64,000 nucleotides of DNA from positions 682,001-746,000 of the forward strand of contig OZ037766.1 in NCBI GenBank assembly GCA_964035545.1. Direction: 5' to 3'. Positions 2,722 through 45,800 of this stretch are shown piece by piece. Within the stretch, counting starts at the first letter, position 1. Each line of letters opens with the position of its first letter. Under the pieces are notes generated by a model. The model was not told the DNA's origin. It saw only the letters and a program-made list of their open reading frames with translations, and made no database searches. The translations under genes were made by a program, and so were the position numbers. Source of the DNA: Bugula neritina (Eukaryota; Animalia; Bryozoa).

Positions 2722-2734
2722 TGGCGACGAGGAT
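2722..2734 (+). promoter_or_regulatory. Primer binding site, complementary to the 3' end of tRNA-Ser(GCT)
   Basis: TGGCGACGAGGAT begins after a 2-nt spacer behind the 5' LTR; its reverse complement ATCCTCGTCGCCA matches the animal tRNA-Ser(GCU) acceptor end. Confidence 0.85.
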
Positions 2735-2751
2735 TGGTTGTGATACTGAAT

Positions 2752-5700
2752 ATGGCTTCAAATATTGGTTCAGTTGGCGAGTTTGATGTCAGTAAACCCA
2801 AAGATTGGCCTACATGGAAACTGAGATTCAAGGCATGGCTGGCTGTCAACAAGATTGATAATGACGATAAAATTAATGCTCTGTTGGCTGTAGCAGGTGG
2901 TGACTTGGTAGACCTTCTGGTGAGTTTATGTCATCCTGCAGATGTTACTACTAAAGACTTTGATGTATTAATGAAATTGATCGACGATCATTATGGAGCA
3001 GGCAGAAATGAAATTGCTGAAAGCTACATGTTTGACTGCAGATCGCAAAATGACACTGAGTCGGTAGCAGATTATGTGGTAGCTCTAAGAAAGCTATCTG
3101 TGCATTGTAACTTTGGAAGCCAGTGGGAACAAAGAATGCGTAATAGACTTGTGTCTGGTGTTAAGAATGATAAAATAAGAACTAGATTGTTATCTGAGGG
3201 CGCTAAATTAACATGGGAGAGAGCAGTAGAAATTGCAATCACAGCTGATGTACAAAATAATTACACTGACATGAGTAGAGCAGCAAACGTTGGCAATGGT
3301 GGTATGAGCGTACAGAGGATTGGCAATGACCGTAACAGGGGCAATGTCATGACAAGGTCAAGGCCAAATTTCAAGTGTTTTAGGTGTTTGGGCACCAATC
3401 ATCAGTCACATCAATGTAAGTTCAAAGACTCTAATTGCCATCATTGCAATATGAAGGGGCATATTAAAAGAGCTTGTAGGCAATTACAAAAGGTGCAGGG
3501 AGTAGAAGAAGATCGCCAACAGCTGATGCCAACACCACAAAGCCAAAGCAGGGCGCCTAGTGCTAGCGGATATCCTTCCACACTTGATCAATATTACGCT
3601 AACCAGAACAGTAGAGACTCTGAGCAGCTTAACTCTCAATACTTTTCATCAAATCCAAATAATGACTGCCTATCAGTACGATGTGTTTCAGGACCGCACA
3701 ATCAACAGATTACGGTGAATGTTGACATTGAGGGCGTGACAATGGCCATGGAAGTTGATACTGGTTCCTGCATTACGTTAATTACTAGTGCAGACTATGA
3801 TAGATATTTTTCCAGAATACCTTTAAAACCTTGTGGTCTTACATTTAGGAGCGCGTCTGGTGACAGCGTCGCGATTTTGGGAAAATTTGAGGTACGCGCA
3901 CAATATGGCGACCAGGTACATAGGCTATGTTTGCGAGTAGCGCGCGGTCACTCTAGGTTGTTAGGTAGAGATTGGTTAAGTGTGATTCGTTTAAAGTGGG
4001 CTGAAATCGGAGCCCAACTACATGGTAACAAAATGGTCAATGGTATTAATTTTGACAGGATTCGGGCCATTAAGCAATTAAAGCAAAAGCACACTGAAGT
4101 GTTCAAGAAAGAGCTAGGCACCCTGAAAGGTATACATGCAAGGCTCAGGCTGAAAGAAGGGACCATCCCTAAGACCACTAAGCCATATAGAGTCCCATTA
4201 GCGATGAGGACCAAGGTTGAAAGTGAGTATGAGAGGCTAGAATCACTAGGTATCCTTGAAAAGGTAAGTGCATCTGAGTGGTCAACAGGTGTAGTGGCAG
4301 TACCCAAACCTGATGGCTCAGTAAGGATATGTGGTAACTACAAAACCACGGTAAACCCAGCATTAATGCCTGTAGCACCTCCTCAAATAAATGTTGACGG
4401 CATTCTGGCAAACCTGAATGTAGATGGTAAGTCGAAATATTTTACCACACTAGATTTGGCGCAGGCCTACAACCAGATGATTGTCAGTAAGGAATCCAGA
4501 CCACTTTTGGCTCTAGCTACGCACAAGGGTTTGTATGCCTACACCAGATTAGCTTTTGGGATCAGTGTGGCACCAGCCTTGTGGCAAAATGCTATGGAAC
4601 AAGTTCTGATGGGTATTGAGAGAGTACAGGTATACTATGATGACATCTTAATAGCTGGAAGAACAGAGGAGGAGCATGTCAAACTTCTAGATCAGGTAAT
4701 GACTAGATTGGAGGAGTATGGCCTGCGACTGAATGAGCAGAAATGTATGTTCTTTAGAGAGTCAGTAGAGTACCTAGGTATGGTCATTGATCAGAATGGA
4801 ATCGCACCGATCCCCAGTAAGATAGAGAAAGTCATAGGCACTCCAAAGCCTAAAGATGTAACACAATTGAGATCTTATGTGAGTATGCTTAGCTACTACC
4901 GTAGATATCTAAAAAATCTGGCACAAGAAATAGCCCCACTGACCAACATGCTTGCAGGTAAGAAAACACAGCTAGATTGGAGTAAAGAGGCTGAGGAGGC
5001 TTTCGCAAGATCTAAAAGCATGCTAAAGAGCTCCGGACTTCTCATTCACTTTGACCCTAAGCTGAAGACCAGGGTAACCTGTGATGCCTCAAGAGATGGC
5101 ATAGCAGCAATATTGTCCCACATTGGAGAGGACGGGCAAGATCGACCAGTGCAATTTTCTTCAAGAGCTCTAACACCGACGGAGAGACTCTACCCACAAC
5201 TAGAGAGAGAAGCTCTAGCAATTGTTTATGGGTTAGAAAAGTTCTACTACTATATCTATGGGAGACGCTTTACCCTAGTGACTGATAACCAGCCACTAAC
5301 ATGGATTTTCCATCCTAACAAGAGTCTACCTATAATGACAGCGGAGAAGATCCAAAGATGGGCCCTATATGTAAGTCAGTTTGACTATGAAATTGAGTTC
5401 AAGCGAGGCCAAGACAACAATGCTGATTACTTCTCAAGGATGCCGGTGGACCCAGCGCCCGTGGATAATGTAAACATTTCAGAGGTAGGGTATGTGTTTA
5501 GCGTGACTGAAGAGGTGTTGCCAGTCACAGCAGAGGTCATTGCAAAGTACACTTTGAGTGACCCTACATTGCTTGGTGTAATGAAATATTCTAGATTTGG
5601 ATGGCCGAAGCACTTGAAAGGAGATGAGGAATCCCTTAGACCATACTATGCTAGAAGAGATGAGATTGGAGTTGAAAGAGGTTGCATCCTGATGGGGTTG

Positions 5701-6906
5701 CGCCTAGTTATACCTGAGCAACTACGCAAGCAAATTTTGGTGGAGATTCACACAGGTCATCAAGGGATAGTCAAGTCTAAGGCTATCGCAAGAAGCTACG
5801 TATGGTGGCCGGGACTGGATAAGGACATCGAGGAAGTTTGTAAAACATGTGAAGCATGTCAGAGAGACAAACCCAACCCCCCAATAGCAGGAACGCACCC
5901 TTGGATCCCTGCTCAAACACCTTGGGAGAGGATTCATGTAGATTACGCTGGACCAGTGGAAGGACACATGTTTTTGATTGTGGTAGACGCATATGCCAAA
6001 TGGCCAGAAATTCTTATGACATCTACATCGACAACATCGGTGACATGCAACGCGTTAAGGGGGCTGTTTGCGAGACATGGCTTGCCAAATGTTTTGGTAT
6101 CAGACAATGGACCATGTTTCACATCAGCAGACTTTAAGGAGTTCACTCAAAGTTATGGGATAATCCATAAGTTCTCCCCGCCCTATCACCCCGCCACCAA
6201 TGGCCAGGCAGAGCGCTTTGTACGCTCATTTAAGGAAGGTATGAAGAAAGGAAGGGGCGCAATACAAGTAAAACTCGACAAATGGCTACTGGCATATCGA
6301 ACTGCTCCTCATAGTGTGACAGGCATTTCACCAGCTAGCAGATTCCTGGGACGGACACTAAAAACAAGGCTGGATTTGCTGTTTCCTAGTCAAAACGCTG
6401 AAAGGTCTAGATTTACTGAGTTGAAAACTAGGCAGTTTGAGGTAGGTGATTTAGTGTGGGCAAGGGATTATATGTCCTCTGACTTCTGGAGAAAAGGTAA
6501 GGTAGTTGAGGTAACGGGACCGCTAACATACGTAGTACAAGTTCAAGGGAAAGGTGAGTGGAGAAGGCATATTGACCAACTGCGTCTAAGAGTGGAGAGT
6601 CGTGACTCAGTGTTAAACGGTCAAGGCACAGGTATGGGTAGGTGGCCAACACAAAATGTAACACCCTATACCAAGATCTACCCAAATCAGGAAAGTAATA
6701 ATGACCCTGATGAACTCTCGAGTGACCACGCAGGCTCGGCTAGACATCAGCCATTTGCAGAGGGGGGCGATAACACTTTGGGTAATGGAAACGACCCGGT
6801 TGTGCCTCACGCGTCGTCGGCATCGAGCGCAGCACTGTCACCAGACGCGATTCCAGTCCGCCGGTCCTCACGGATCAAGAAAGCACCTGTTAGATTGAAT
6901 TTGTAA
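2752..6906 (+). CDS. Gag-Pol polyprotein (two CCHC zinc knuckles, aspartic protease, RT, RNase H, integrase)
   Basis: Uninterrupted ORF from ATG 2752: CFRCLGTNHQSHQC and CHHCNMKGHIKRAC knuckles, VDTGS protease, YYDD RT, CDAS RNase H, HHCC plus IHVDYAGP/SDNG/GQAER integrase, and a GPLTY (GPY/F-like) motif. Confidence 0.97.
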   Translation: MASNIGSVGEFDVSKPKDWPTWKLRFKAWLAVNKIDNDDKINALLAVAGGDLVDLLVSLCHPADVTTKDFDVLMKLIDDHYGAGRNEIAESYMFDCRSQNDTESVADYVVALRKLSVHCNFGSQWEQRMRNRLVSGVKNDKIRTRLLSEGAKLTWERAVEIAITADVQNNYTDMSRAANVGNGGMSVQRIGNDRNRGNVMTRSRPNFKCFRCLGTNHQSHQCKFKDSNCHHCNMKGHIKRACRQLQKVQGVEEDRQQLMPTPQSQSRAPSASGYPSTLDQYYANQNSRDSEQLNSQYFSSNPNNDCLSVRCVSGPHNQQITVNVDIEGVTMAMEVDTGSCITLITSADYDRYFSRIPLKPCGLTFRSASGDSVAILGKFEVRAQYGDQVHRLCLRVARGHSRLLGRDWLSVIRLKWAEIGAQLHGNKMVNGINFDRIRAIKQLKQKHTEVFKKELGTLKGIHARLRLKEGTIPKTTKPYRVPLAMRTKVESEYERLESLGILEKVSASEWSTGVVAVPKPDGSVRICGNYKTTVNPALMPVAPPQINVDGILANLNVDGKSKYFTTLDLAQAYNQMIVSKESRPLLALATHKGLYAYTRLAFGISVAPALWQNAMEQVLMGIERVQVYYDDILIAGRTEEEHVKLLDQVMTRLEEYGLRLNEQKCMFFRESVEYLGMVIDQNGIAPIPSKIEKVIGTPKPKDVTQLRSYVSMLSYYRRYLKNLAQEIAPLTNMLAGKKTQLDWSKEAEEAFARSKSMLKSSGLLIHFDPKLKTRVTCDASRDGIAAILSHIGEDGQDRPVQFSSRALTPTERLYPQLEREALAIVYGLEKFYYYIYGRRFTLVTDNQPLTWIFHPNKSLPIMTAEKIQRWALYVSQFDYEIEFKRGQDNNADYFSRMPVDPAPVDNVNISEVGYVFSVTEEVLPVTAEVIAKYTLSDPTLLGVMKYSRFGWPKHLKGDEESLRPYYARRDEIGVERGCILMGLRLVIPEQLRKQILVEIHTGHQGIVKSKAIARSYVWWPGLDKDIEEVCKTCEACQRDKPNPPIAGTHPWIPAQTPWERIHVDYAGPVEGHMFLIVVDAYAKWPEILMTSTSTTSVTCNALRGLFARHGLPNVLVSDNGPCFTSADFKEFTQSYGIIHKFSPPYHPATNGQAERFVRSFKEGMKKGRGAIQVKLDKWLLAYRTAPHSVTGISPASRFLGRTLKTRLDLLFPSQNAERSRFTELKTRQFEVGDLVWARDYMSSDFWRKGKVVEVTGPLTYVVQVQGKGEWRRHIDQLRLRVESRDSVLNGQGTGMGRWPTQNVTPYTKIYPNQESNNDPDELSSDHAGSARHQPFAEGGDNTLGNGNDPVVPHASSASSAALSPDAIPVRRSSRIKKAPVRLNL

Positions 6907-8745: not shown

Positions 8746-9443
8746 GTACTAATAAACTAGTCCTTAGAATTTATTACTTATTAGTTTTAAAGTTGTTTGA
8801 AATAGAATTAATAAATAATACTTTATAGATGAAGCTGAAAATACAAAGCAGAAAATATTCAAATGAGAAATCCACTTTGCTAAACAAACCAACAATTATT
8901 ACACTTATTAGTGCAAGTTAGGTAATATTATTTTAGTACAAATATGTTATAAGCTACAAGCAGTTACACATCTGATTATAAATGGAACATCTAATTTAAA
9001 AATATATTTGTTAGTTTCAAAAAGAAATATGAAATAGATCCTTAAAACTGCTTAAAGAAATGATATAAATCATTGTTTTTTAATTAATTTATTGTATTCA
9101 ATATTTAGGTGCAATTGAATATTTTTTAAGCACAATTGAATTGTTAATTTGCTTTTTGTTGCAGTATGAGGAATTGCATACTCTCTTCTTTGCAGTCCTT
9201 ACAAGCGCACCCCCCTTTCTCTCTATACACTTATTTTATCTGGCATACCCCCTTTTTCTTTTCTGCACTTCTACATATTCCTGCAATAAATATTTCAATA
9301 ATATTCAAATAAATTGCACATAAAATATATATTGTACCAAAATAAGTAAATATCGTCTAACTGGGAAGGATCCAAGTGGGAAACATCTAAGTGGGAAATT
9401 TAGTCTATCGTCTAACTGGGAAGCGTCTATCTGGGATGACACC
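8746..9443. mobile_element. Probable non-autonomous DNA transposon with only the right TIR recognisable; same family as 46168-46657
   Basis: Right end has repeated TCTAA(C/G)TGGGA units ending GGGATGACACC (9443), like 46621-46657. ACCAAAGT follows at 9444-9451 and also occurs at 8738-8745 (candidate 8-bp TSD). The left TIR is not seen. Confidence 0.45.
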
Positions 9444-9613
9444 ACCAAAGTCATATAAGAGCTAAAGTGACACCAACGCAGCATGTAGCTAAACTGACAA
9501 GTGATTCAAGGTGCTTGTTATTTACAAAATCATATTATTATAAATATATAGGTAGGGTTCCTTACCTGGTTAATTGCAGGGTCTAACTAGTGCAGGTAAT
9601 AGTTATCAAACTG

Positions 9614-9676
9614 TATATAAATGTTACATAACCAGTCCACCAGTAAGTGGAGCTTCAGAGTTCAATAAACAATCAG
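9614..9676 (+). promoter_or_regulatory. TATA box and probable non-coding first exon of prohormone gene A
   Basis: TATATAAA at 9614-9621; donor CAG|GTAAG at 9676/9677; the acceptor TACAG ends at 10046, one base before the ATG. The paralog has the same layout. Confidence 0.55.
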
Positions 9677-10047
9677 GTAAGCAACACTGGACGTTTGTTT
9701 TGACTTTTTTCTCATTTCAAGTAACACTTTGTAGAATATATCTCACCATATTTGTTTATAAGTTGTTTAGATATCACAAATAATTAGAAACTTAGTTAAT
9801 GAAATACTCCTGTGCTAATTTGTGTCATGACTTAATGTGCTGGCGTTTTGTTAATAACACTCACTAAACTTCGTATGTAAATGAATTGACTGACAAAACT
9901 TTCAGCTTTGCCTTTAAACTTTTCAATTTCTGCTTTTCACAAAATGCTATAGATAAAAAATGTATTACTCATTCAACTCTAAAAAAGAGATATAAACATA
10001 ATATTTATGTTATTATTGACATGAGTAAGATTACTTGATGTTACAGA

Positions 10048-10688
10048 ATGACAGGCACCCTGATCTGTACGCTGCTTTTAGCGCTGCTAGTAGCTCTAGA
10101 AGCACGTCCTGCACCCGCCCTGCAAAATTGTGATCTACACGAACACCGAGATATTGACTCAGAACTGTACGAACTCCAAAGAGCTATTGCAGCCAAGAAT
10201 TCTCGTAAACCTATCAGTGCAGATGCATTGAAGAAGTTACACAGAATGAAACGTGGTGTCTCTCTTGGTAAGTTTTATATGATATGCCAGCAGAGTATGT
10301 AAATGTGTGCATATATGTATATTTTACAACCGTGAGTATAAGTATAAGAATAAATGTATATGTATAATGTAAGTGTAGATACAAGTGTAGTGATACAGTG
10401 AAAGGAGTGTTTAGTTTATAGATGTTGACAGTCAGAATTAGTGCGCTGCTTAATATAATATCATCTTTGTAATCACTGCTTTTAAAAAAGTTCGATGTTT
10501 GGTTGGTTTCAGCTGGTCTTGACAATATTGGAATGGTCGCCTACTACTTGGAGAGAATCAGACAGCGGCACAAAAATGCCCCAAATACTACCCTCCCCCC
10601 TACCCGTCCCCCTCCTGCCCACATTGCTTCTACAGATATGGACTTGCTGTTAGCATTGCTGGACGAGTCGGCACCTTCTCAATCGTAG
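10048..10688 (+). CDS. Secreted prohormone/neuropeptide-like precursor A (131 aa; exons 10048-10267, 10513-10688)
   Basis: Signal peptide MTGTLICTLLLALLVALEA|RP, furin-type RMKR site, phase-1 GT-AG intron, predicted mature region GVSLAGLDNIGMVAYYLERIRQRH...TRPPPAHI...DLLLALLD; clear paralog at 17922-18774. Confidence 0.85.
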
Positions 10689-11801
10689 GATGTACCGGAG
10701 CATGCCCTCCTCCGCTTGATAGTGAGTCTTTTCACTTCTCAGTAAAAGTAATGCTTTAAGGGTCCAGCTGACTAAAACGATGCGTAACTGTTTTATATAA
10801 TATTTCGACTTTTTGTGTGAAAATACAATTTTGAGTAAATAACCTGCCATATTAAACTTTAAACGAAAGGTTTACAAATGCTCAGCCATTAAAACATTTA
10901 ACTTGACTTAGTTATATACTGAAATATTATCAAACATTATACTAATACCAGCTGCTTAGTCATATCTAAAGAAACTTATAAATAATTTTTAGTTTATTTT
11001 AAAAGAGGCCTATTAATATTTAAAATAAGTAGAACAACGTTTTCTATTATTTATGTAAATAATATATGGAACAATGTTATTAATGATTTAATTTATTTTG
11101 TAGACTACCAAACACGAAGCAAATATAATCTTTCGATTATACTTACAGAAGTTTCCAACTTACCAGCTTTATTTCTCTCTCTAAATCTCTTGGTATATAA
11201 CTAAATGGTTTATTATTTACTTGTATCACTTGTGTTGTGACTCATGCCAGTGTTTACTGCCAACTAATGCTAATAAATACAGTATATACAGTTTAATAAA
11301 AAGTTTAAGTATATATTTATGCACTTACTTTTTTATATTGACACAGTTGCAAGGTTTGGAATAAGTTTAAACGTACTGCCAGATAAGACAAGGTTTAACT
11401 ATACAGTTTACTTTATCATAGAGAGTTGTTATTACGTAACATGTGGCAGCAGCTTTCAATGCAGATCATATCAATAAATATACAAATGGGAGTTGCTTCC
11501 CCAAACAAAGAGTTACTAGGTTTATAAATACAGAGTTATCTTCCCATCAGTTATCAAAGAATATTAGTTTTCTATTTGCCGTACATTTAGCAGGGTATCA
11601 TGGTATACAACTTTTTCATTCTCATCACTTCTCTGTCACTTTAAGTTTTATTATTAACTGATAAGTAGAAACTCGCACAAGTAAGTATTGCAGGAAACAG
11701 AAACTTTAAAAATAACATAATGTTGAAAAATATTGATACAAAATTATCATAGAAAATACTCTTTCCCCATCTTATTTTTAAACTCAATTATTTTTTAAAC
11801 A

Positions 11802-12041
11802 ATACAGTATAGCCTCTGCTTCAACTGTACAGCATAGCCTGTGTTTCAACTATACAGCACAGCCTGTGCTTCAACTGTACAGTATAGCCTCTGCTTCAAC
11901 TGTACAGCATAGCCTGTGTTTTAACTCTACAGCATAGCCTGTGCTTCAACTATACAGCATAGCCTGTGCTTCAACTATACAGCATAGCCTGTGCTTCAAC
12001 TGTACAGCATAGCCTGTGCTTCAACTGTACAGCATAGCCTG
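11802..12041. repeat. Minisatellite, 25-bp unit (AGCATAGCCTGTGCTTCAACT[AG]TAC), ~9.5 copies
   Basis: Direct tandem periodicity. Confidence 0.9.
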
Positions 12042-15000
12042 GACTTTTTTTCAATCATGAACTGTGTTATAGAAAGGGGATATATTTGCTGGCTACATTC
12101 CAAATGATGTAGTTTGTACAAAGACAGTTAATCACTCTTTGAACAAACTGGACATGGTTAGACCAGTATAATAGTGAGAGATTCTGTTAGTCTGTTGATA
12201 CTCTAGCTGTGCACAGCTACAAGTGCTAATTATTAATGTTTGCTGTTGCTGTTTGTTATTGTTGATTATAGTGTGAAATACGCTGCTTTATTTAGCCCTA
12301 ATATACATATAATAATAATAATAACAATATCTGTGACAATAATTATATAGCTAAAGTTTGTAATGAGTTGACAAGTAACAAAATTAGATCAAAATGATGT
12401 GAGAACATTCAAACTGATAAAGTGTTCAAAACACCCTCATAGCTCAACTATGTGTGGTCTTAAAATCTATTTTTAGTTGTTGGGCAGTGCTGAGGGTTGT
12501 GTAGTAATTTGATATCACCGTTGTCACCTCCCAGCTAGCAAAATCATTTGAAGTTTAGATTAGCCCAAATCTATAGGCATCAAAGTTCTGTGGAATAGAT
12601 TTTCCCACTGCACGCTTGCCATGTGAGTGAAACTTGCTGGTCATAATATGAATTTGAAGCTGTGAGGGTGTGTGGTTGATATGACGTATACAACAGACGT
12701 TCACATATCTTGTAGTTTATATATTTAGGATTTTATTTATTTATAACAGTGGGATGTTCATAACAATGCAGATGAATATTAAACTTGAAGTACTCTTACT
12801 GTAACATGATACGGGTGGGTGGGAAGTTGAGTCATGTCATCGCGGTAGAGTAGAACATAAAGTTACAGCTGTTACTGCTATAAGACTTACACTTCAAAGT
12901 GTAGGTGGTATGGGTTTGTATTATGAGCCATTGTCATGTATTGTCACATGCATTGTATATGTATATATATATATATATAATTTATGTTGGAGCTATTAGG
13001 GGCGTTATATGAGAGAGGGACAACTCTGTTATTTCTCTATGAATAAACAATGATTTATCATATGTTTATGACTAAATTCAAATTGGCCAACAAAAATATT
13101 TAAATTACTAATTACTTTTGTTTTTTAATAAAATTAGAGATAAATTACAAATCTGCATGAAACACATAAGTTAAAGCAATCAGTGAGTCAATTTGTTTAG
13201 CTGCTACACAAAAACTGAAAAATTATGTCATACATGTTTGTTTGCATGAGTATAAATTGTATAGCAAAACCTTAAAATGTTCTTTTAGAGACCACACCAC
13301 TACATGTATATACTGACTTGTGCCTTTTACAGAGTGCTGTTTAAACTATATATAAAGCAGGTTTGCATCACTTAAATATCATGTTTTCCAGAATGCAATT
13401 GTTGGGTGCTGAAGTACTATTGTGAGATGTTATACAAAATACTTTAATATTATAAACTATATCTTACCATAACTAAAGTTTGTTGAAAGGTAAATAGAAG
13501 ATTATGAAATACGAAAAAGCTGCATAATATGAATTATGTTACAGAAATATACAGTACAATGAAAGGTCCTCAACAGTCTGAAAATATGCAATGTGCCTGT
13601 ACACCACATGCATGTGTAGCATCTCAGCATTGATAAACTTCAAAAAGAGTGGATTCAATGGGGGCATAAGATATGTATTAAAAACTTGAAATTTAATTTC
13701 AAACCATAGCCTATGTAGCTGAAATTGAAATTATGTTTTAAGTATATATAAGCATATTTAATAATCAGCCGTAGAAAGCTCAGGGGTTAAACTTTGATGG
13801 CAGGCTTTTAAGAAAAGTTGTAATTTATAAGCACAAAAATATTTCTCCACCACTGAATAGAATTATTATTTGATATAGATAATAATTTGCAAAAATAATC
13901 ACGCATACAAAACACAGCTCTATTTCTAATATATTGCAAAACCATTGCTATTGCAACACTCACTTGACTGCCATATTTCCTGAAAAAACCATTTTGCTGA
14001 CCTTAAAATTTTGCTAAACATTTGAAAAGTTGTGCACTTGACTTGAAGTGATTCATTGCAAAACAAAACAACAATTTTATTGTGTATTTCATATAAAAAT
14101 CCCTCAATATGTTTCAATACATTCTCACATGTGAAGCAGGGTTTTCTATTTTATATGATTCATAAGAATTGTATAAACAATACTTTGACATCAACAGCAT
14201 TCATTATTAAATATTATGTATAATATTATAATATAATAATAAAGTATAAATAATATATTTATTGCAATCATAGGTCTAAAAAAAAGTTAAAAAGCTCAAA
14301 TAAATGTGAAACATATTTATATATTTCATATTATTTGCAGTGTACCATCTCAAAGAAAGCATAATTTATAAATATTTTTTACAACAGTCATGTTTGTTGG
14401 AGGATATATTGACATCATGCATTGGCGGCTGATTTAGTATAGTGATAAATTGAACATTTCTGATGGCCATAAAAATAAAATATTGTTCCTAAAAACTCAT
14501 GCTTACAATCTATTATTCAATTAATATTAATAATAATGTTTGTACAAGTTATTGGCATACTGACTCATAAACATGATCATGAAGACCGAATGCAGGTCAC
14601 TTGCACAGTTTTCCAGTGAACTTAAACTGTACATAAATCACACCATTTCGCATCAACTTTGGCAGCTATACTATAATATTGCTAGAGAAAATTGGCAACT
14701 CTCCAATTCCACTTAACATACTTTTCAATACTCCTACAAGTATCCATAATTTCAGAATTAGCAAAAGATATAGATTAGATGTTATTTTCTTTACATTTAA
14801 AGTAATTGGCAACACCACAATACAATAGTTCATCAATTCAAACATATCTGTAGAGTATACTTCATATATTCACTTTGCTTATATCAGTAACTCATCCTAG
14901 CTATATGAGTTGAATTTATTCAATATGATCTCACTTAAACTAGAAATGACTCAACACTATACATTTCAATATTAGTCATTGAGTTCACGAGGCGTGTCTT

Positions 15001-15924
15001 GTGAATAAACTTCATATCTCTTTCATGTTCATTAGCGTAACGTGAAACGTAATTTGTTAATAGGAAGGAAATTGGCATTAACCTCAAAATGCTCATTAGT
15101 CATTTTCAGTATTACATACGAGCCAGTGTTAATCAGAAATTTTTAATAGTGAAAAAATATTTTTTTTTATCTCATCCATTATTTCCTTATATATTGAGAT
15201 TCCGAAACTACACATCTCTGTACTGACATATTTTGGTTGTGACAATTTTATTTTAAAATATTTTAGTGCTGCATGAGTCTAACTTGCAGTTTTATTTTGA
15301 AATATTGTATTAAAAATATTTTAAAATAAAAGCTTTATGCAGACTCTAATAATAAAGGTAGAGTTTGGAGTATTTAAAATGCAGACATTAAGTAAAGAAA
15401 TGTAATAAATGGAGTCGGTGTGTTCCTTTACCTAGCCTGTGCTAAATGCACATTAAGCCAGCAGAATAATACTATACTTTTCTTTTTATTTACTGACTTT
15501 TATTAAAAAGAACCAATATAAGTCAATTTTTGTTTTTAGTAAACACAACATTTCAGTTGTCTTAATTAATTAATTAAACACTTAGTTCCGTCATGTCTTT
15601 GTATAATCATATGGTTGTGGCACAAATAGAATGTGGTTCTATATTTGATGGATTATAATATTTCTGCAGATAAAGGATGTAAATAATATTAGATATGTTG
15701 CAATGTCATATTTTATGGTTATGAATGTATATTTTGAATTGCTCTATGCATGAGCTGCATATGTGTGTATAATTAGTTCCATAAGGTTTTACTTGATGTC
15801 CCTTCATAAGCAATTCAAGATATGTGTATTCTCCACAATTGCAGCTTGTTCAAGGTACATTGAAGGTTATTGGGAAATCTGTTTACTACAGCCAGCACTA
15901 TAAAAGCTCAACATTTTGTAATTC

Positions 15925-16030
15925 ATTCCCCCCTCCCCCACCTTCACCCCCTCCCCCACCTTTACCTCTCCCTCCTCTTTCAACCTCTCCCCCACCTTCT
16001 CCTGACCTTTGCCCCCCACCTCCATTTCAC
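15925..16030. repeat. C-rich polypyrimidine tract
   Basis: Runs of CCCC separated by T/A in an otherwise AT-rich region. Confidence 0.75.
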
Positions 16031-17127
16031 TAATAAAGTATGCTTTAGAAATCTCTGTACTCTTATATATTTTAAGTTTTATATTTTTTAAAAAAGAGCA
16101 CTGGTAAATTGTTTTCTGTTGCTAATGTATATATAATACTTGTAAAACTGGCATTTGAATTTCTTTTTACTGTATTTTTGCTTCGTATAGAGTCATTTTA
16201 AAGTAAATTAAAAGTATTCATCTTGTTAGGAGAAGCAAAATAAATTTTCTGCAATATAAGAAAGCACTCATACAAATATGGAAAGCTTCATATCGTATGT
16301 AAGTTTAGTGCGAAATGAATTATAGCATTTCTCATTAAAGAACAATTATCAGTTGAAATATTATAGAGAGTATTGAAATAATTTATAAAGCCTTGGTTGG
16401 TTTTCTATAGCCAGGAGTTAATGTGGGGAGCAACAATTAGGAATGCTACTTCAAATTAAGCTTTACAATAAAATAAAAGCCTCAGAGCAATGCAATAAGT
16501 ACAAGCCTGCAGCGCTACGTAGTAAAATGGGAGCTGAATACAGTGGATAACTTAAAGTGAGCATGTATTGGCACATGCATGTCTTTCTATGAAAATGTTT
16601 GATTTGCCCTAACTAAAGATTAATATTATATTTAGTTCAATGCTATTAACTATGTGGAAGCGGAGCTAGACTTAATAATGGACATATTTTCAGGTTAACT
16701 AGTTTTAGCAATCTGGAAATAAAAAACTTGACATCTCCAAACTTACTCTAATACAGTATAGCCTACTTGTATATAATTTTTGTGGATATTATCATTGTGA
16801 AAATGTTATAGGCTGGAGTTTTAATTTATGTTTTAATTAATAAAGATTTGTCCAGCTGATAGTGATGAGTTGTAAATTCTATTTTTAGAATATTATCATA
16901 TCATAACAGAAAGAATAACAGATGAAGTGTGTGGCCTGTGTAGTGTGGAACACATGTTCTATTGTGAATGGAAAATTATCCAGTATAATATGTTATTATT
17001 AATCTAATAACCTAATGCAGTAGCACTATACAATGCTATGTGCAGTGACAGGTTATGCAAGGTGCTTGCTACTAGCATCTGCTGTGAAGCTCCACCTATA
17101 AACATGTCAAAACACGAGTTGCTGAGA

Positions 17128-17245
17128 TATATAAGGACTGCTTCTGTATCCACCTTTCATTCCAACAGCTACTGCTGCCCCTAGCTGTCAACTCACAACA
17201 TTTAAGGCTATAAATTCCAACGGAAAGTTTATTGCATTCAGACAG
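17128..17245 (+). promoter_or_regulatory. TATA box and probable non-coding first exon of prohormone gene B
   Basis: TATATAAG at 17128-17135; donor CAG|GTAAG at 17245/17246; the acceptor TTTTAG ends at 17920, one base before the ATG. Confidence 0.6.
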
Positions 17246-17921
17246 GTAAGGGCTGACAGCTGACGTTAGCTTCTTTTAACTTTTCTTATAAAAAAAATTC
17301 AGATAACAAATATTTTGCTTTGGAATGTGTGGCACAGTTTTGGTGTATAATAATGCGTTTAATTATTGTTACAGGCATTATTTATAAAACTTTTATTTAA
17401 AAGCTATCTATAAATTCCATGCAATTATATATTACTTGTATTGTACCTGTTGATATTAATTAGTTAGATCTCTGCTGCTGTAATAATTATCCAGTATGAA
17501 ATAACAATGGCTCGGGGTGGTTTAATTATCATAATGTATATATATAGTATTATATAGTATATAGTACATTAGTTTTACTATCAACTCTCAGAGTACACGG
17601 TATAGAGTATATTAGTTCTACTATCGGCTGGAATATAGTAAGATATCCGCTGGAGTTATGCTGGTGTATTTCTCATCAATCCAGAATCTTGTTTGTCTGT
17701 GAGCTTTGTATATAAAGTAAAGGGAAATGTTATGTCTTCACCAGCAGTTTAACATAACAAATAGTTGTTAGATAATGGTTATGCTATTTAGGGCTAAATT
17801 AAGTTAGTTTCTTTGCAAGGGGCATATTTTATAGCGAAGGTTAACCAACTTAAGGTTCACAAATTTTTTAGTAATAATAAAATTTCTGCTGCTTTGTTTT
17901 AGCCTTGGTTCTTGTTTTAGA

Positions 17922-18774
17922 ATGAGGGTGGAACTGTTTCAAGCCTGCCTGGCATTACTGATGTTCATATCACTAGAGGCTAAACCTCTCCGAAGATTAT
18001 CTACACAATCCGAGGGGGTTGGAACACCTCCCATAGTACAATTGTTTCATAGACTGAGAGTTAGAGAGGAGTTAAGTTTGCGGAGCAGAGTTGATGCGCC
18101 CTCTACCAGAAGTATAATGAGAGACTCAGCTAGAGTAAAGAGAGGAGTTAGTTTAAGTAAGTTTAACTCTGATTGTTACTCAAAACTCACAATGCAGTCA
18201 GTAAAGCTACACAATGGTGTGACCCAGTCACTGCTAAGACTTGCCATCAGGAAATTATGCTATACAATCCAGTGTTTACTCTTGTAGTAGCTATTGCCAA
18301 TTGTTAGTATTTTTCCTCAATTATTATTTTTTGGCTGGCTTTAAGCCTACTTGAAGGTTTATTGTCAAAATTGCTAATATTTTGATCACCAAACTATAAT
18401 GTTTAGTAGTATGTGAATTTATACTAAATAATAGTTGTTTGTATTTGTAGCCAGATTCCAAGTAGCAGTTCCATGTCCAAATAAATTATTAAATATTATA
18501 ACTTAACATAACAACATATTTACAAGTTGAATAGCACATTCAGTTTATATAACACATGAAAGTCAGTTTTTTATTGAGGCAAAATTTTATTTCAAACGGA
18601 ATTTTGCTTTCAGTGGGTCTTGACAATGTAGACTCCGCTACATCAGCCTTAGAGCAGATCCGAAACAGGCATCGTCACGGGCACGGGGCCACTCCAGCCA
18701 CCCGACCTCCCCCAGCTGTCATCTCTGAGTCTGAGCTAGATCTGCTGCTACATCTGCTGGAGAGCAAGAAGTAA
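17922..18774 (+). CDS. Secreted prohormone/neuropeptide-like precursor B (131 aa; exons 17922-18156, 18614-18774)
   Basis: Signal peptide MRVELFQACLALLMFISLEA|KP, RVKR site, phase-1 intron at the same position as in gene A, predicted mature region GVSLMGLDNVDSATSALEQIRNRH...TRPPPAVI...DLLLHLLE. Confidence 0.85.
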
Positions 18775-21428
18775 CCTCCCCATTGATCTCTAAGGTGAGA
18801 TAGTCTATATATTATATGTACTCTCTCATTGCACTTCATTGATCTCTAAGACTTTCTAAAGATTGAAATTATATGGTAGAAGTTTTATAGCAGCTAAAAG
18901 AAATAGCTTTATGTAGCAAAAACAGCTTTTAATGAATTTTATAACAAAACCTAAAAATTAGAACAGCTCAAATAAATAGTCAATACATAAAAATTTGGTT
19001 TTTCTTTTTAATATAATATTTAAAACAAAAAGCTATAACCTAGGTAACAGTTTCTCCCTGAAGGTTCTTTTTCTATTTTCAGTAAACTTTCATATTATAT
19101 CTGTTATTTTAAAAATATTTCATTGAATCTCAAACGCCATTACTCTCAAAGTCAATATAAGTAGCGATGAAAAGATTACAAGAAACTCAGTTACAGAGTT
19201 AACTTCTAGCTATGAGTCAACACCCTGTTGAGTCTGAGATAGGGTTAATTTGATGAGGCATTTACTCCATACAATAGAGTTAGCTGAACCGTAAAGACTT
19301 AATCCATTCTTTCCTAAGAAAAGAAGGAAGTACCAAATTTCTAATATCCTTCTACCCGTCTCTTAGATTTCCCGATAAGACCCCAAACTCAATCAGCATC
19401 ATAGTAGCTTCCACATGTCAACAACAACTCAGGGCAGACCCAAAGCACGTAAACTATCCTAGTAATTGCGTTGTTCTTGGCAAGCAGCTGGTCTAGGCTT
19501 AAATAATTTAGAGTAATAAAATGTGCATATTGTAAGGCAGGGTGTACCTTGCACTCCTCATTTCTCTGCTCATTGTTTATTCCCAACTTTATAAACAGCC
19601 TGCAAATGATGTAAGAAAACATTCCTAAATTCCTCTCCTCACCCAGCCTCTAATTTTGTTAACAAAACTCAGCTTTACTGATTTTGTCCAGGATAAAAAA
19701 TTTGCCCTTTAGATTCTTAGTATTTTATGACATATGTAAGATTAATTACGCCCAATATTTGTTTAAAATCATTCTTTTTGTTTACATTCCTTGGAAATTA
19801 CATAACATTGTCTTCTTCAAATTGCAGTCACGTCCATCCTGTTAGTTTATTGTCATTAACAGCTTTGATATCAGTTACATAATCACCTCCAGTACAGAAC
19901 AATTAATAATCACTTAATCAAACACTGTTTGACCTTGAGGCAAAGGTCATGTCTCAACAGTTTTACTCAGTTTATTAACTTGAGTAAATTTAAGCTACAA
20001 ATTAGCACACTAAGTTTATGAGCAAACTATCTTCATAGTCTTATTGGCTAGAGTTTGTTTTTCGGTATCATTTTTGCTTTTGAGTCATTTAAAAATTGAT
20101 ATGTTTTTCTATAATAGTTTTTAAATCAACAAATTAATTTAAAAGTATGAATAATGCAGGGTAACGCCCTGAAGATGTTAGACTTATTATTTGACACAAG
20201 TTCTTGACCTTTCTTGACCTTTTGCTGTTGATAGTCAGCTAGCTAATTACTGAGTGTAATTAAATAATTGTTCCAATGAACTGGTAAACAATAACAGTCA
20301 TCTGTCTCCATGAACTACCAGCTGCTCTGTATAGCTTAGTTTTAATATCTTTGAAGATGACTGAAAAATATCCAATAAAAATCATAAAATAAATTAAAGT
20401 TTTGTTAATTTAAAATCAACAGCACAAGATTTTGAGTCAAAGAGAGGAAATTTATACAGTACTACAAATAAATTGATAGTAATTCTGAAAACAGGCCTAT
20501 ATACAAAATTAGCATTTTATCCAGATGGAGTGTCTGTGCATGTGTGTATATCTTTACTTGTACTACATTAATCTATTACCATAATATAATATAATACAAT
20601 AATATATATGTTATTTTTCTTTGTAGAAGCTAAGCTGTGATATAAACTAGAATGCTCAAAGTGAAACCCCCTCCCAAACAGAGTTCCCATTTCTGTCCAT
20701 CCTAATAATTATGTATAACATGTATATATCAACTTGTAACAACACATGTACATATTTATATTTATATACTTTATTAAATGTCATGTTTTTACTATTATAA
20801 TATATTTTATTTTCTTTAAATAATGTGCATAGTTTGTAAAAATTTATATAATTCATTAAAAGTAATTATGAGAATTAAAAAAAAATTTATATATCCTGGT
20901 AATCTTTTACAAAAGTTCATAAATTTGTGTTATTTATTTAATTATATACCCATGGTTATTTATTTGTGAAACTTTATTTCAGTTTTCTCTTTAGTTTTCA
21001 CAACTAGAATTTGTATCTGTTGTTATCTTCTCCCATCGAATTCTATTAATATAAATACAATGCAGCTATCTGTGCTTTATTTAGCTCTGATATCTACAGA
21101 TTATCAATTCATAAATAGAGTTTATTTTTGATTAAAGTACACGCCTGAAAACTACGTATATAACTCACGTCATCATTATCAGAAGTAAGAAATTAATCTT
21201 TCAAATTTAACTGAAGAAATGCTGCAAATTATTGTAATGTTTAATTCTCTAATAAGAATTTCTGCTTTTAAATATTATATATAAATATAAAGTAAGAAAA
21301 TTTACATATAAAGATTACAAGGGGATGTATAGGATATAATATTATGCCCTGAGCATCACTTGCAGTATTAGTTACTACTATTCTTCATGTGAGAGCTCAT
21401 TGTATATATCTACTATAATATATAAGTG

Positions 21429-24040: not shown

Positions 24041-27000
24041 ATGCCACACCTTAGCAAGTGAGATTAGTTTGCTGATTTGGTTAGTTGGTTCTTTCGAGTA
24101 CCGCCTAAAATTCAGCTGCATGCAAGTTACGTTTGTACTCCACACACAGGCATCATCTTATTCACTTCTCTTGACATGTTAGCTGCTCTATTCAAAGGAA
24201 GTAGTGAAGTCGTTGAGAAGTTTGTGTCCTAGAACTGTGTAAGGGGTGTGTACATCTCTATATTGGTATTTGAGCTTGAGCTACTAGCAAGTTCATGTCT
24301 GCTAACCATTGAAACAGAATACATCTGCTAGAGCAATGAATATGATTAACACTGTATTTACCAAAGAGCAACTGTATTTACCAAAGAGCAACTGTACTTG
24401 GCAAAGAGCAACTGTACTTGGCAATGAGTAACTGTACTTGGCAATGATCAGCTGTACTTGGCAACTTACTCAGGTCAAAATTCTGGTCCAGTGGAAGCTG
24501 CAAATTGGCAGTTGGCCAAGTCAAGCTGCCAATTTGCTGTTATACCTTAGCTGTGTTCTTCATTTATCCGGTTTAATAAAGTTAGAGCAAGTTTTACCCC
24601 CCCCCCTTCTCTGTGCTCTCATAGCAGCTGGAATTTTGTGCCGCTCTGTTATCAGCCACTGCATTGTGGTATAAGTTCTATTTAGCTACAGGAGTTGTGC
24701 TCTCATAAATCATATCTGCTCCAAATATTTACATTCAAACGAAATGCCAAAGTTTTTTATTTACTGTGAGTTGTATCTGGCAGGTGATTTTAGAGTGGAG
24801 TTGTTTTGGTATACTACTGTTAGCTTGTAGCCCTGTTACTATATATATAGTACCACTCTTAGCTTGTATCCTGTGACTATATAATACCACTCTTAGCTTG
24901 TATCCTGTGACTATATAATACCACTCTTAGCTTGTATCCTGTGACTATATAATACCACTCTTAGCTTGTATCCTGTGACTATATAATACCACTCTTAGCT
25001 TGTAGCCCTGTTACTATATAATACTACTCTTAGCTTGTAGCTCTATATGACTATATAATACCACCCTTAGCTTGTAGTCCTGTGACTATATAATACCACT
25101 CTTAGCTTGTAGCCCTATGACTATATAGTGCTACTCTTAGCTTGTATTACTATATAGTGCTACTCTTAGCTTGTATTACTATATAGTACCACTCTTAGCT
25201 TGTATTACTATATAGTACCACTCCTATAAGCTTGTATTACTATATAGTACTACTGCTAGCACGGAATCCTGTGATATTGACAGTGTAATAGTTGACTAGA
25301 AGAGTATAAGTTGGTCATAGTACACACATAGCTGCAGCACATCATAATATCCAGCCTACAAAACCAGACCTAGCAGTAGTATTATAAGGCTTGCTGCTGC
25401 CTTTCAGAAATGTGGCTGTCTTATCTGTCAGCATTTCACTATCTGGAGATCAACAGCTGACAGAGTTCAAAGCTGTCATTCTGTACTTAAACTAACAGTT
25501 GATATGGTTTCTCATTTATAGCGGAGTGATAGATAGGAACCACACTAAACACCACCCTCGTGTTAGACAGCATGGCAGTGTAGAAACTCAGGCTCAACTG
25601 TAAGTTTATTATCTCTAGGCTTCTCAAAGTATGTCTGTCTGTCTTTCTGTCAGTCTGTCTGTGTGTCTACCACACAGCTCTTATTCATGACCTACCAGTG
25701 CCACCATCTTATTTCTGGTAAACTGCAATAAGATATATAAACTTTGTCAATAAACTTAAAACCTTTATATTTGGTAGTAAATGAGTATAAAATATAGACC
25801 ACTGTCTCTAAATATAACTGAGAGAACTCACGTAGTAAGATATAAGCATGAATAAGCCGATATAAGCATGAATAAGCCGATATAAGCATTACCAAGTTAA
25901 GTATTAAAACCAACACGTCTCTCTAAAACATAGTTTCTACATAATGCTAATTCTCTGACTTGCAGAGCAAATGGAGAAACTCCCAACCAGGAAACAAAGG
26001 AGGAAAAAAATGTATGTGACTCAAAAGATATGGATAACTTCTTCACTACAATTCCATACAGGTAAGGATATTCCATACAGGTAAGGATGTTTCATACAGG
26101 TAAGGATATTCCATACAGGTAGGGATATTCCATACAGGTAAGAATATTCCATACAGGTAGGGATATTCCATACAGGTAAGAATATTCCATACAGGTAGGG
26201 ATATTCCATACAGGTAGGGATATTCCATACAGGTAGGGATATTCCATACAGGTAGGGATATTCCATACAGGTAAGAATATTCCATACAGGTAGGGATATT
26301 CCATACAGGTAGGGATATTCCATACAGGTAGGGATATTCCATACAGGTAGGGATATTCCATACAGGTAGGGATATTCCATACAGGTAAGGATATATCCTC
26401 ACAGTCCCTAACTGAAATAACATACGAGGGTAGCTTCAAACATGCACAATGTTTAATATGCTGACAAATACCATACCATGCCATGCCATGCAAGTATATG
26501 TAAAAGTTTGACTGATTGATTTATTACATATTGCACAGACATGTTGTGAAATTCAATGTAAATACTGTTTATAAAAAGTAGGCATGAACAGAATTGAAAA
26601 AAAAGTCAGAACTCTGTTAGATTATTTAAAATAAAAGATCATTCAAAGTATTTACAAGATGGAGTAAAATGCTAGCTCTGTTTCTAAGCTGAGAAAATGT
26701 ACAATGTCAAGCCAAAGAGATGCAGCGAATTCAACTGCTAATACAGAGATTTACCTGCATGCAATAGCTACTTAAGTATAGGTGGCACTATCTATACTGG
26801 TAGCACGACTTTGGGACTGCAGTTAATAGTTAATCATAAAGGCAGCAGAAATACTCTATAATGATGATGTCATCAGGGAGCTTCACTGAGTGAAATTAGT
26901 TTGAATTTTGTATGCACTATGGCCAGATATTGTTTTGTTTAAGGAGAGAATCTTACTATATAAGTGTTTTGCTGTAAAACAGTGAATCAAGAAATGATGA

Positions 27001-42205: not shown

Positions 42206-42475
42206 CCAATCAGATCAAACATTACATCCAGATCACATGCAATACTTTATTTCACACTAGTAGAAGAATCACAACACTGATGATATTTTACATTGTAGAT
42301 TTGCTATATTTAAATAATATTTTATTATACAAATGAGGAAATTTTGTATTCCAGTATTTTTATTATAAAAATAATTACAAAATCAATTCTGTATCATATC
42401 ATTACAATAAGAATGTGATAATATCCCGGCTTGTAGCACCAATCAATATATTAGCTGTTATAACTCTGCTAATAG

Positions 42476-42631
42476 CAAACACTGTCTGGCAGAGTGTTAT
42501 GGGAAACACTGTCTGGCAGAGTGTTAGGGGAAACACTGTCTGGCAGAGTGTTAGGGGAAACACTGTCTGGCAGAGTGTTAGGGGAAACACTGTCTGGCAG
42601 AGTGTTAGGGGAAACACTGTCTGGCAGAGTG
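42476..42631. repeat. Minisatellite, 27-bp unit GAAACACTGTCTGGCAGAGTGTTAGGG, ~6 copies
   Basis: Lies between the NCBP3 and DNAJC1 stop codons. Confidence 0.9.
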
Positions 42632-42836
42632 CTAGACTGTGGAGGAAACAAGACAACTGAACAAAACAAGCAGCGTCTTTGTTACCTACTAGTACATGTG
42701 TACTTTGCAGTACTTCTACTAGTGTAGTATGTAGACACACGGAGTTGAGTATTCTTTATAGAAAGGTTTGAGGAATGTAGAGTTGTCTTCTATCGTCTCA
42801 GTGGTAATCTAGTAACCGCGCAGGTCTTTGTTTCGC

Positions 42837-45800
42837 TTAGGAATTTGTGTTTAATAACTTCCGCTGTTTGATGACAGTGGCCAAATGTTTATATCTGGCA
42901 ATACACTCTGCCTACAAGTTAGATTTATTATTATATTATATATAATATTGTAATATATAATATAATTACATTACTATGTGATAGCATAACATACAACACA
43001 GACAGCACCACTGAAACACTTGGGGGTCGGAAAAGGGAGGAACGATTAGTTAAACATGAACATAGCCTAAGCACCAACTTGCCTTGGTTTTGTTGGGGAC
43101 TAGATTAGCTATCTCCTCCCACCGATCATCAGCAGTCTTTGGCACTGAGGCTAGAGCATTCTCTAGACATTTCTGCTGAACCTGAGTCCAGTCTGAGACC
43201 GGCTGAGACGGCGCAGAGTTACTAGCCTCAGGATCTTCAACTCGGTACGAGATTCCACCCTGGGGCTTGTAGCCGGCCCCCTTGTTTTTTATTTCTACAG
43301 TAAAGAGCTTGTGTAATTGGACTACAGACATGATTAGAAGGATATTTTACAGATGTGTCAACCTGATGACACCTGTCAATATATGTCAACAACCTGTCGG
43401 TATGTGTCAACACAAGTGATATTTACCTGGCAAAGCTGTCGCTGAGCTGCTGGCAGGTTTCTGCTGCAGTTGATTAGCCCGAGAGATCTGACTAGCCCTG
43501 GAATGAGCCTCTGCAGGTAAACAGTTGAGTTGTTGTGCTATCTTCTCCCACCTCATCTGAGTACCTACAGGGAACTTCTGCATGGCCCGGGCCAGCTTAG
43601 AGTAGTCTGCGTCTGTCCAATGAGTCTGTAAGGAACGAGTAGCTTATGTGTAAGGAGAGACAACTTCAACATATCAACACTGGCCATACAAACGAGTACT
43701 AATATCTACAGGAAAATGACATACAAATAGTAAGCAGCTTTTACTATGTCAGCAGTTGATTCATCATAACGAGATATTGTCACCTTGACCCACAGTTTAG
43801 TAATTAATAGAACAAAGTTCACTATTCCACGGCTGGCTGAGTATTACTCAACAGTTGAGAGACCTTTTTAGCCTGAGCAGTTGGTTTCTTAGCCTCAGGT
43901 GGTGAGACAGCAGGAAGGGGGGTGTCTTGGTACACCACAGGTTTGATGTAGGTGGCCATCTCTGGGGCAGACATGTTGGAGAATACGTCGTCACATCTCA
44001 CCTTCTTCTTCGACTCTTGATTGGTTTCTGCATACAGGAAGTCTGTTGAGGTGAGACAACTCCAAGTGCAAAGTGAAGTCATCAATATTATTATTAGAGA
44101 CGTCAAACTGTTGACTGATACTACGTAGAATACAGACAGACACAAGTGCGACATGAGAAAGTAAAGTGATTGTAATTTACCATCTTCAGACTCCGCCTCC
44201 CCTACTGGAGGTTTCACTCTCTGATGTAGGGCGGATAGACACCACCCTATGTTACTAGGCAAGTCAATGACTGTGCGTACAGTGAAGGTGACTAGACGGC
44301 ACACTAGCAGGTGTGAGAGGCGGGGCTTAGTCACACTTTCTAGCTCCTTCGCCATCGCTTCCTCTAAACTCTCATTATACTCCTGGTGATTCCTTCTTTT
44401 CGTGTCCTTTTTCATCCTTCTCTGAAATACTTCCTCCTACAACACAGGACCTGTGGTAGAGTACCTGTGGTCTAGTAGTAGAGTAGATCTAGTAGTAGAG
44501 TAGATCTAGTAGTAGAGTAGATCTGGTAGTAGAGTGCCAAAACTGAGAGAAACTAAGTAAGTAAAGTACACACTTACTATTTCATATCGTTTCTCCCAAA
44601 AAGCTGCCCAAATCATGGCATAGTGAATTACTGAAACTATTATCAACAAAACCAGAGCACTTTCTGTGAAGCCAAACTTTCTAACTTTCCTGTAGTAATA
44701 GATGGGTTGGCGCCATGTTGGTAGCCCATTCACTAGAATCTCATCATACCTGCAGTGTGGACACGCATTACGGATAATAACATTGGAAAAGGAACTCAAT
44801 TGATGTTTATTTCCAATTCACAGGCAACTCAGAAAATATAACTGTTGAGTCAGATGATTAGAATGCAAGTAGAAGTCTCTCAAGAATATCGCCATCATTA
44901 AAGTGAAACAGTTGTACAGTATGAGCCTGATACGTACACACATGTTCATCAGATACGTACACACATAGCAGATACGTACACATAGCAGATACGTACACAT
45001 ATAGCAGATACGTACACACATAGCAGATATGTACACACATAGCAGATACGTACACACATAGCAGATACGTACACATATAGCAGATACGTACACACATAGC
45101 AGATACGTACACATAGCAGATACGTACACATATAGCAGATACGTACACACATAGCAGATACGTACACATATAGCAGATACGTACACACATAGCAGATACA
45201 TACACATATAGCAGATACGTACACATATAGCAGATACGTACACACATAGCAGATACGTACACATATAGCAGATACGTACACATATAGCAGATACGTACAC
45301 ACATAGCAGATACGTACACATATAGCAGATACGTACACACATAGCAGATACGTACACACATAGCAGATACGTACACACATAGCAGAGATGTATACATACC
45401 GAGATCTCTTCCCATCAGTTCTCAATATGTCATAAATCCCAGCCAACTAAAAGCAAAAACTATTGTGATGTAATACAGTAAACTATTGTGATGTAATACA
45501 GTGAACTATTGTGATGTAATACAGTAAACTATTGTGATGTAATGCAGTAAACTATTGTGATGTAATGCAGTAAACTATTGTGATGTAATGCAGTAAACTA
45601 TTGTGATGTAATACAGTAAACTATTGTGATGTAATGCAGTAAACTATTGTGATGTAATGCAGTAAACTATTGTGGTGTAATGCAATGGATAAATTTTTAA
45701 GTGCTGCAAACATTGGGATTGCTGCTTTTACTTCTGCAAGTAAAAGCTGTAGATGCTACCAGTACCTGTCTAAACCTTTCTTCTGCGTCATCATTTTTAT

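Follow-up and report, generated by a model that had tools for sequence, protein, structure and literature searches.

We identified two tandem genes in the bryozoan Bugula neritina that are predicted to encode small secreted precursors, each of which would be cut by a convertase to release one conserved C-terminal peptide. Both genes lie on the forward strand of a 64,000-nucleotide stretch (C2:682001-746000; hereafter the window) of a 216-Mb, 321-contig assembly, and we refer to them as gene 1 and gene 2. A preceding sequence-only reading, made without database searches, had proposed them as a peptide signalling family. For the gene structures we read positions 9600-11400 and 17500-19200 directly and translated the exons singly (Table 1). 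The coding exons comprise 220 + 176 nt in gene 1 and 235 + 161 nt in gene 2, in each case 131 codons, and both genes have a phase 1 coding intron directly after the GVSL codons, where it splits a codon for Ala (gene 1) or Met (gene 2). An AG acceptor lies one base 5' of the ATG in both genes. The exon coordinates of the sequence-only reading, its 131 codons per gene, its phase 1 intron after GVSL and its acceptor one base before the ATG proved exact.

The two predicted proteins have the same layout. Each begins with a hydrophobic stretch of 13-14 residues that ends in LEA and is followed by RP or KP, and this leader, with Ala at position -1, is kept in both paralogues and in both lineages compared below. 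A basic motif, R-M-K-R in gene 1 and R-V-K-R in gene 2, stands immediately 5' of GVSL. R-[MIV]-K-R adjoins GVS in 4/4 sequences (two paralogues, two lineages), and the flanking pro-region is variable; a conserved basic cleavage motif that borders a conserved peptide is the pattern that marks a putative convertase-processed precursor. Past this motif, gene 1 encodes a predicted product of 62 residues that ends in ...APSQS, and gene 2 one of 57 residues that ends in ...LLESKK; both products start with GVSL[AM]GLDN. Neither product contains Cys, a Gly-Lys/Arg amidation site anywhere past RxKR, or an internal dibasic site; each precursor holds a single product, with no repeats. The net charge of the product, calculated from the sequences, is about -1. 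An AlphaFold2 model of the part encoded by the second coding exon (4-row alignment, mean pLDDT 73) consists of two helices, at residues 3-21 and 39-52, joined by an unstructured linker rich in Pro and Thr, and the hydrophobic moment of the first helix is moderate (0.35-0.39). The leader, non-conserved pro-region, R-x-K-R site and conserved C-terminal region of 62 or 57 residues described from the letters alone are all present in both genes.

When the entire assembly was searched in six frames with the second coding exon of gene 1, only genes 1 and 2 were recovered. A third, weak genome match (L003) was rejected as a proline-rich chance match that contains a stop codon and neither GLDN nor DLLL. 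Between the paralogues, identity is 27% in the first coding exons, nearly all of it in the leader and RxKRGVSL, and 48% in the second, where the conserved blocks are GLDN, LE.IR.RH, T.P.TRPPPA.I and DLLL.LL. In the second coding exon 25 of 57 columns are identical, and 16 of these 25 residues are specified by different codons. Because synonymous sites are saturated (paralogue pS 0.76) and most of the identical residues use different codons, the duplication is old, and selection on the protein in exactly this frame has preserved the shared motifs. We conclude from these comparisons that genes 1 and 2 are ancient tandem duplicates. The common origin suggested by the sequence-only reading is supported, and the coding intron has the same phase and position in both genes.

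Word-seeded protein searches with intron read-through open reading frames (ORFs) of the first coding exons identified orthologues in a second, related lineage of B. neritina. Those of gene 1 lie in contigs L004 and L011 (both JGI) and L012 (SRR4020080), and those of gene 2 in contigs L006 (SRR4020080) and L013/L014 (SRR4020083/84; first coding exon only). Across 3-4 independent samples of this lineage the coding frames are uninterrupted, and splice sites and intron phase match those of the window, at a non-coding identity to the window of about 81-92%. We calculated dN/dS from Nei-Gojobori counts exon by exon, excluding the split codon, with a Fisher test (Table 1). Purifying selection, which the sequence-only reading had named as a check, is detected over the coding exons of both genes, and it is concentrated on the released peptide. 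All five differences between the second coding exon of gene 2 and L006 are at third codon positions and synonymous (p = 0.0012). In the second coding exon of gene 1, comparison with L004 revealed changes at none of the 25 columns that are identical between the paralogues and at 10 of the 32 others (p = 0.0016). We conclude that the constraint on gene 1 is real but confined to the core motifs.

DNA run X1 contains two haplotypes over gene 1 that differ by about 5%; the sequenced individual is highly heterozygous at 9400-11400. The frame of the second haplotype is open. It carries the L004-like variants T2R, Met to Thr, Lys to Arg and Leu to Arg, several synonymous changes, an in-frame 3-nt deletion in the tail and indels in the 3' untranslated region, and its replacements fall at variable columns. 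Some of the difference between lineages thus segregates as alleles, and therefore the dN/dS values mix divergence with polymorphism, which leaves their direction unchanged. The second haplotype also has amino-acid variants in common with contigs of other B. neritina samples. The coding intron of gene 1 (10268-10512) is 92.5% identical between lineages, compared with 86.8% and 90.8% for the exons and 85-89% for the flanks; an intronic regulatory element or a mosaic haplotype ancestry is possible.

From intact frames, conserved splicing signals and the substitution pattern we conclude that genes 1 and 2 are real and selectively maintained. Their description as a pair of secreted, convertase-processed peptide precursors is well founded as a prediction, in which we infer transcription, splicing, secretion and cleavage from the sequence. 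Neuropeptide and hormone precursors cut by convertases typically have, as this pair does, a signal-like leader, a variable pro-region, a conserved R-x-K-R and a conserved C-terminal peptide; the small gene, the putative non-coding leader exon (see below) and the tandem paralogues are further points of likeness. The Bugula pair differs from the generic precursor in its single, non-amidated product of 57-62 residues, with no Cys, no repeated copies and no detectable relative.

We searched for relatives with single exons as queries throughout; no profile included the five residues across the junction, GVSL[AM], which somewhat softens the negative outcomes for individual families. No Pfam match was found for the four exon pieces. 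A hidden Markov model (HMM) of the second coding exon, searched against 1.84 billion representative proteins, returned only two repeat-derived proteins with DMVTGATEQIRNRH repeats, which we rejected as chance matches. A word-seeded search with a 76-residue open frame, in which proteins of 131 residues were admissible, gave no match, and a scan of metagenomes gave one GC-rich bacterial contig, also rejected as chance. The ESM Atlas yielded nothing usable, a profile of the product matched no PDB sequence, and a search of papers for the literal motif strings found none. The sequence-only reading could name no matching family, and within Pfam, the PDB and the protein collections, queried exon by exon, neither could we. 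The main text of the only dedicated survey of bryozoan peptides gives 11 precursors in B. neritina, and the Bugula pair is absent from the names and peptide strings in that main text (PMC4990251). As judged by these searches, the genes constitute a new orphan family within a familiar kind of gene, so far found only in Bugula.

How would such a precursor function? A signal peptide, cut after LEA, would route the 131-residue pre-pro-protein into the secretory pathway, where furin or a prohormone-convertase-type enzyme would cut after R-x-K-R and free the C-terminal product; the terminal Lys-Lys of gene 2 would probably be trimmed by a carboxypeptidase, reducing that product from 57 to 55 residues. 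The mature peptide would present an invariant free N-terminus, GVSL[AM]GLDN; behind it, TRPPPA would form a Pro/Thr-rich linker between a basic helix with LE.IR.RH and an acidic helix, rich in leucine, with DLLL.LL. The N-terminus would contact a receptor, with the product acting as a hormone or neuropeptide-like ligand. An extracellular signalling peptide is suggested because strict conservation begins at the newly made N-terminus, and we favour this function, with moderate confidence, as the most likely one. The prohormone family of the sequence-only reading is supported in its gene models, its common origin and its variable pro-region giving way at R-x-K-R to a constrained product; the hormone role that it attached to them is a prediction here as well.

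Several observations weigh against a secreted signalling peptide. At -3 to the predicted signal cleavage stands Leu, a tolerated but sub-optimal residue. Many neuropeptides are shorter than the product and are amidated at the C-terminus, which the product is not. Gene 1 is only modestly constrained: its second coding exon gives a dN/dS that is not significant on its own, and the dN of gene 1, 0.086, is about 0.7 of the flanking non-coding divergence. No relative was detected outside Bugula in the HMM and word-seeded protein searches. A search of sequencing runs with a 9.4-kb query over both genes matched only X1, a DNA run, at a query length that can hide a small RNA. The spliced 131-residue product is absent from the protein collections, two of the searches of which admitted that length, and all of the cluster members recovered are intron read-through ORFs from genomic contigs. 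This absence argues only weakly against strong expression in the material that was sampled. The B. neritina survey emphasises that transcripts of neuropeptides are poorly recovered in larval transcriptomes (PMC4990251).

The evidence for secretion and processing would fit equally well a product without a hormonal role, such as a defence peptide, a regulator or chaperone of the secretory pathway, or a larval or zooid extracellular matrix or adhesion factor; 7B2 and proSAAS, for example, are regulators or chaperones for convertases. Fast evolution, seen in the pro-region and in gene 1, and high haplotype diversity are common in defence and reproductive proteins, and the long two-helix product matches no known receptor-ligand family. 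However, a net charge of about -1 is unlike that of cationic antimicrobial peptides, there are no Cys residues, repeats or Pfam domain, and two copies do not amount to an expanded defence family. Moreover, conservation is strongest at the new N-terminus, as expected of a receptor ligand. We consider a non-hormonal role unlikely, although it ranks second after a signalling role.

A more specific alternative is that the products are very diverged ligands of class B (secretin-type) G-protein-coupled receptors (GPCRs), similar to PTH/PTHrP/TIP39 or to CRF/DH44/ELH, with an N-terminus that activates the receptor and a helix that binds its ectodomain. The structural model, in which a 19-residue helix comes after an unstructured N-terminus, agrees with this proposal, and the precursor size of about 115-131 residues resembles that of prepro-PTH. 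PTH and PTHrP start with xVSE directly after KR, carry [LM]ER about 17 residues further on, are non-amidated and have a long C-terminal tail; PTH has a non-coding first exon and an intron before the cleavage site. The Bugula genes resemble the PTH family (PTH, PTHrP, TIP39; PF01279) in xVS after KR, [LM]ER, a non-amidated product with a tail, precursor size and a putative non-coding first exon, but their intron lies four codons past the cleavage site, and the Pro-rich break and second, acidic helix are foreign to class B ligands. Aplysia ELH reads IS.......EQIRER, at a spacing similar to that of E.IR.R in the Bugula product; the CRF/DH44/ELH family (PF00473) shares with the pair this motif, an [IV]S[IL] start and a helical ligand. 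The Bugula product, however, is about 20 residues longer, broken by proline and without a C-terminal Gly-basic amidation signal.

Profile searches did not support either relationship. The PTH model matched none of the exon pieces at E <= 10, nor the locus in a whole-genome scan in which the controls matched nowhere, which indicates low power; the CRF model likewise matched neither the exon pieces at E <= 10 nor the locus in the whole-genome scan. No PTH, PTHrP, TIP39, CRF or urocortin chain appeared in the PDB profile search at E <= 10. Four weak matches to the CRF model elsewhere in the genome (L007-L010) are without precursor features and look like chance. CRF/DH44/ELH peptides and iPTH/QSGamide carry an amidation signal (PMC7224569, PMC8557429), and the protostome ligands of PTH receptors, iPTH/PXXXamide/QSGamide, are amidated (PMC7224569, PMC8557429). 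In the latter the G-X-X (basic) signal for amidation and cleavage is strictly conserved (PMC7224569); it occurs in neither Bugula product. Membership of a known class B ligand family is improbable. Equally doubtful is the proposal that the pair represents a new type of long, non-amidated hormone whose N-terminus and helix act on a class B GPCR, whether as a diverged member of the PTH/CRF superfamily or by convergence; if true, it would give bryozoans a two-ligand endocrine system unseen in other lophotrochozoans, driven by the private 25-nt promoter element described below.

We also considered a degenerate relationship to the pedal peptide/orcokinin family. The BnFDSIG-like peptides of B. neritina are given as SFDSIGNG and its BnPep-like peptides as YLERIGSGN in the survey, which lists five partial copies for the BnPep-like transcript of 2016 (PMC4990251). 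In the same organism, gene 1 carries LDNIG and YLERI, short strings of the [FL]D.IG and YLERI types, and LDN[IV][GD] could be the counterpart of FDSIG. We found that the genome encodes the BnPep-like string YLERIGSGN at five places, on contig C6. One BnPep-like exon (L015, G000:C6:10954804-10957830, minus strand, 1309-2166) contains nine copies of YLE[RK]I[GS]SGN.LVG(KR), more than that transcript listing. Such precursors hold many short copies between dibasic spacers, unlike the single long product of the pair, which lies on contig C2, and gene 2 reads LEQIR rather than YLERI. An hhalign comparison with the BnPep-like precursor of L015 gave a probability of 0.4% and left the YLERI repeats unaligned. 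We therefore rejected the link, which is very improbable. Least credible of all is that the genes are chance ORFs or decaying duplicates: the run and protein searches revealed neither transcripts nor homologues outside Bugula, but two open frames with identical intron phase have persisted across a duplication saturated at synonymous sites, the differences in the second coding exon of gene 2 are 5/5 synonymous, replacements track the conservation between paralogues, and no sample or haplotype observed carries a disrupted copy of either gene. A private upstream element is conserved as well.

With a signalling role as the favoured function, the poorly known peptide signalling of bryozoans gains a lineage-restricted, selectively maintained candidate pair. 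Synthetic versions of the two peptides could be used for receptor deorphanisation and in larval settlement assays, B. neritina being a major fouling organism. Should the products be class B ligands, they would shed light on how PTH/CRF-type ligands diverge until they are no longer recognisable; should they be an orphan restricted to Bugula, they would be a useful, ordinary addition.

The regions upstream of the genes have sequence elements in common. A repeat search identified a 26-nt match between 9495-9520 and 17046-17071, and a degenerate 25-nt pattern derived from it has, with up to two mismatches, only two sites in the 216-Mb genome, one 5' of each gene. The sequence TGTATATAAA also precedes gene 1, at 9612, and gene 2, at 17707; the window has three copies of it, where about one is expected. 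The sequence-only reading had assigned both genes a TATA box and a non-coding first exon. For gene 1, this model is retained: its putative leader exon is 93.9% identical to L004, compared with 86.9% just past the donor. For gene 2, contigs L006, L013 and L014 of the related lineage all lack four nucleotides of the TATA at 17707. The segment 17041-17245 is 95-97% identical to L006, and the sequence directly past the donor at 17245 is 81% identical; because identity drops at that donor, we infer that 17246-17920 is the 5' intron of gene 2 and that its leader exon ends at 17245. A putative leader at 17127-17245 thus replaces the model based on the 17707 TATA. The two genes are probably under shared regulation, and the 25-nt element would serve as a handle for locating the cells that express them.

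Table 1. Predicted features of the two B. neritina genes (window coordinates) and their dN/dS against the related lineage; the ratios mix divergence with polymorphism.
Feature	Position	Strand	Details	dN/dS	Fisher p
Gene 1 conserved 25-nt upstream element	9495-9519	+	TGACAAGTGATTCAAGGTGCTTGTT; one of a repeat pair; copy 9495-9520 100% identical in L004		
Gene 1 TATA and putative non-coding leader exon	9612-9677	+	TATA 9612-9621; donor CAG/GTAAGC 9677/9678		
Gene 1 first coding exon	10048-10267	+	ATG 10048; leader 10048-10104 (ends LEA), pro-region, R-M-K-R 10243-10254, GVSL and first base of split codon	0.32	0.0045
Gene 1 phase 1 intron	10268-10512	+	GTAAGT...TTTCAG; donor G/GTAAGT 10267/10268, acceptor TTTCAG/ 10512/10513; splice sites kept in related lineage		
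Gene 1 second coding exon	10513-10688	+	Remainder of predicted 62-residue product (GLDN, YLERIRQRH, TRPPPA, DLLLALLD); stop 10686-10688	0.47	0.21
Gene 1 both coding exons				0.37	0.0015
Gene 2 copy of 25-nt upstream element	17046-17070	+	One of a repeat pair; 97% identity to L006		
Gene 2 TATA-like sequence and putative non-coding leader exon	17127-17245	+	ATATATAAGG; strong donor CAG/GTAAGG 17245/17246		
Gene 2 first coding exon	17922-18156	+	ATG 17922; leader 17922-17981 (ends LEA), pro-region, R-V-K-R 18132-18143, GVSL and first base of split codon	0.57	0.38
Gene 2 phase 1 intron	18157-18613	+	Read from the sequence; donor A/GTAAGT 18156/18157, acceptor TTTCAG/ 18613/18614; kept in related lineage		
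Gene 2 second coding exon	18614-18774	+	Remainder of predicted 57-residue product; stop 18772-18774; 0 replacement and 5 synonymous differences from L006	0	0.0012
Gene 2 both coding exons				0.32	0.01

At the 3' ends, consensus-like donors (GTGAGT; AAG/GTGAGA) lie 25-45 nt past the stop codons, at 10730-10736 and 18797-18803 on the plus strand, and they are also present in L004 and L006. Their position suggests a possible intron in the 3' untranslated region of both genes, lying so near the stop that nonsense-mediated decay would be avoided. A minisatellite of about ten copies of a 25-nt unit (TACAGTATAGCCTGTGCTTCAAC) is located 3' of gene 1 (11744-12091, plus strand) and is also found in L004 at 2330-2440; a fragment of the unit recurs at 16750.

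The 30 kb surrounding the peptide genes is otherwise gene-poor. About 3 kb 5' of gene 1, an open frame of 1390 residues (2734-6906, plus strand) encodes aspartyl protease, reverse transcriptase, RNase H and integrase domains, and represents a Ty3/gypsy-type retrotransposon. Further along the window are two ordinary housekeeping-type neighbours: a Myb/SANT-like exon (43050-43328, minus strand; E = 8.5e-4, below the Pfam cut-off), and a histone-fold exon (63163-63312, plus strand; CBFD_NFYB_HMF, E = 1.7e-5), which we take to be POLE3/CHRAC-like. Tandem repeat arrays at 26021-26493 (minus strand), 42402-42740 and 44818-45446 (minus strand) give rise to long spurious ORFs, with, for example, PYLYGISLPVWNIPTCMEY units.

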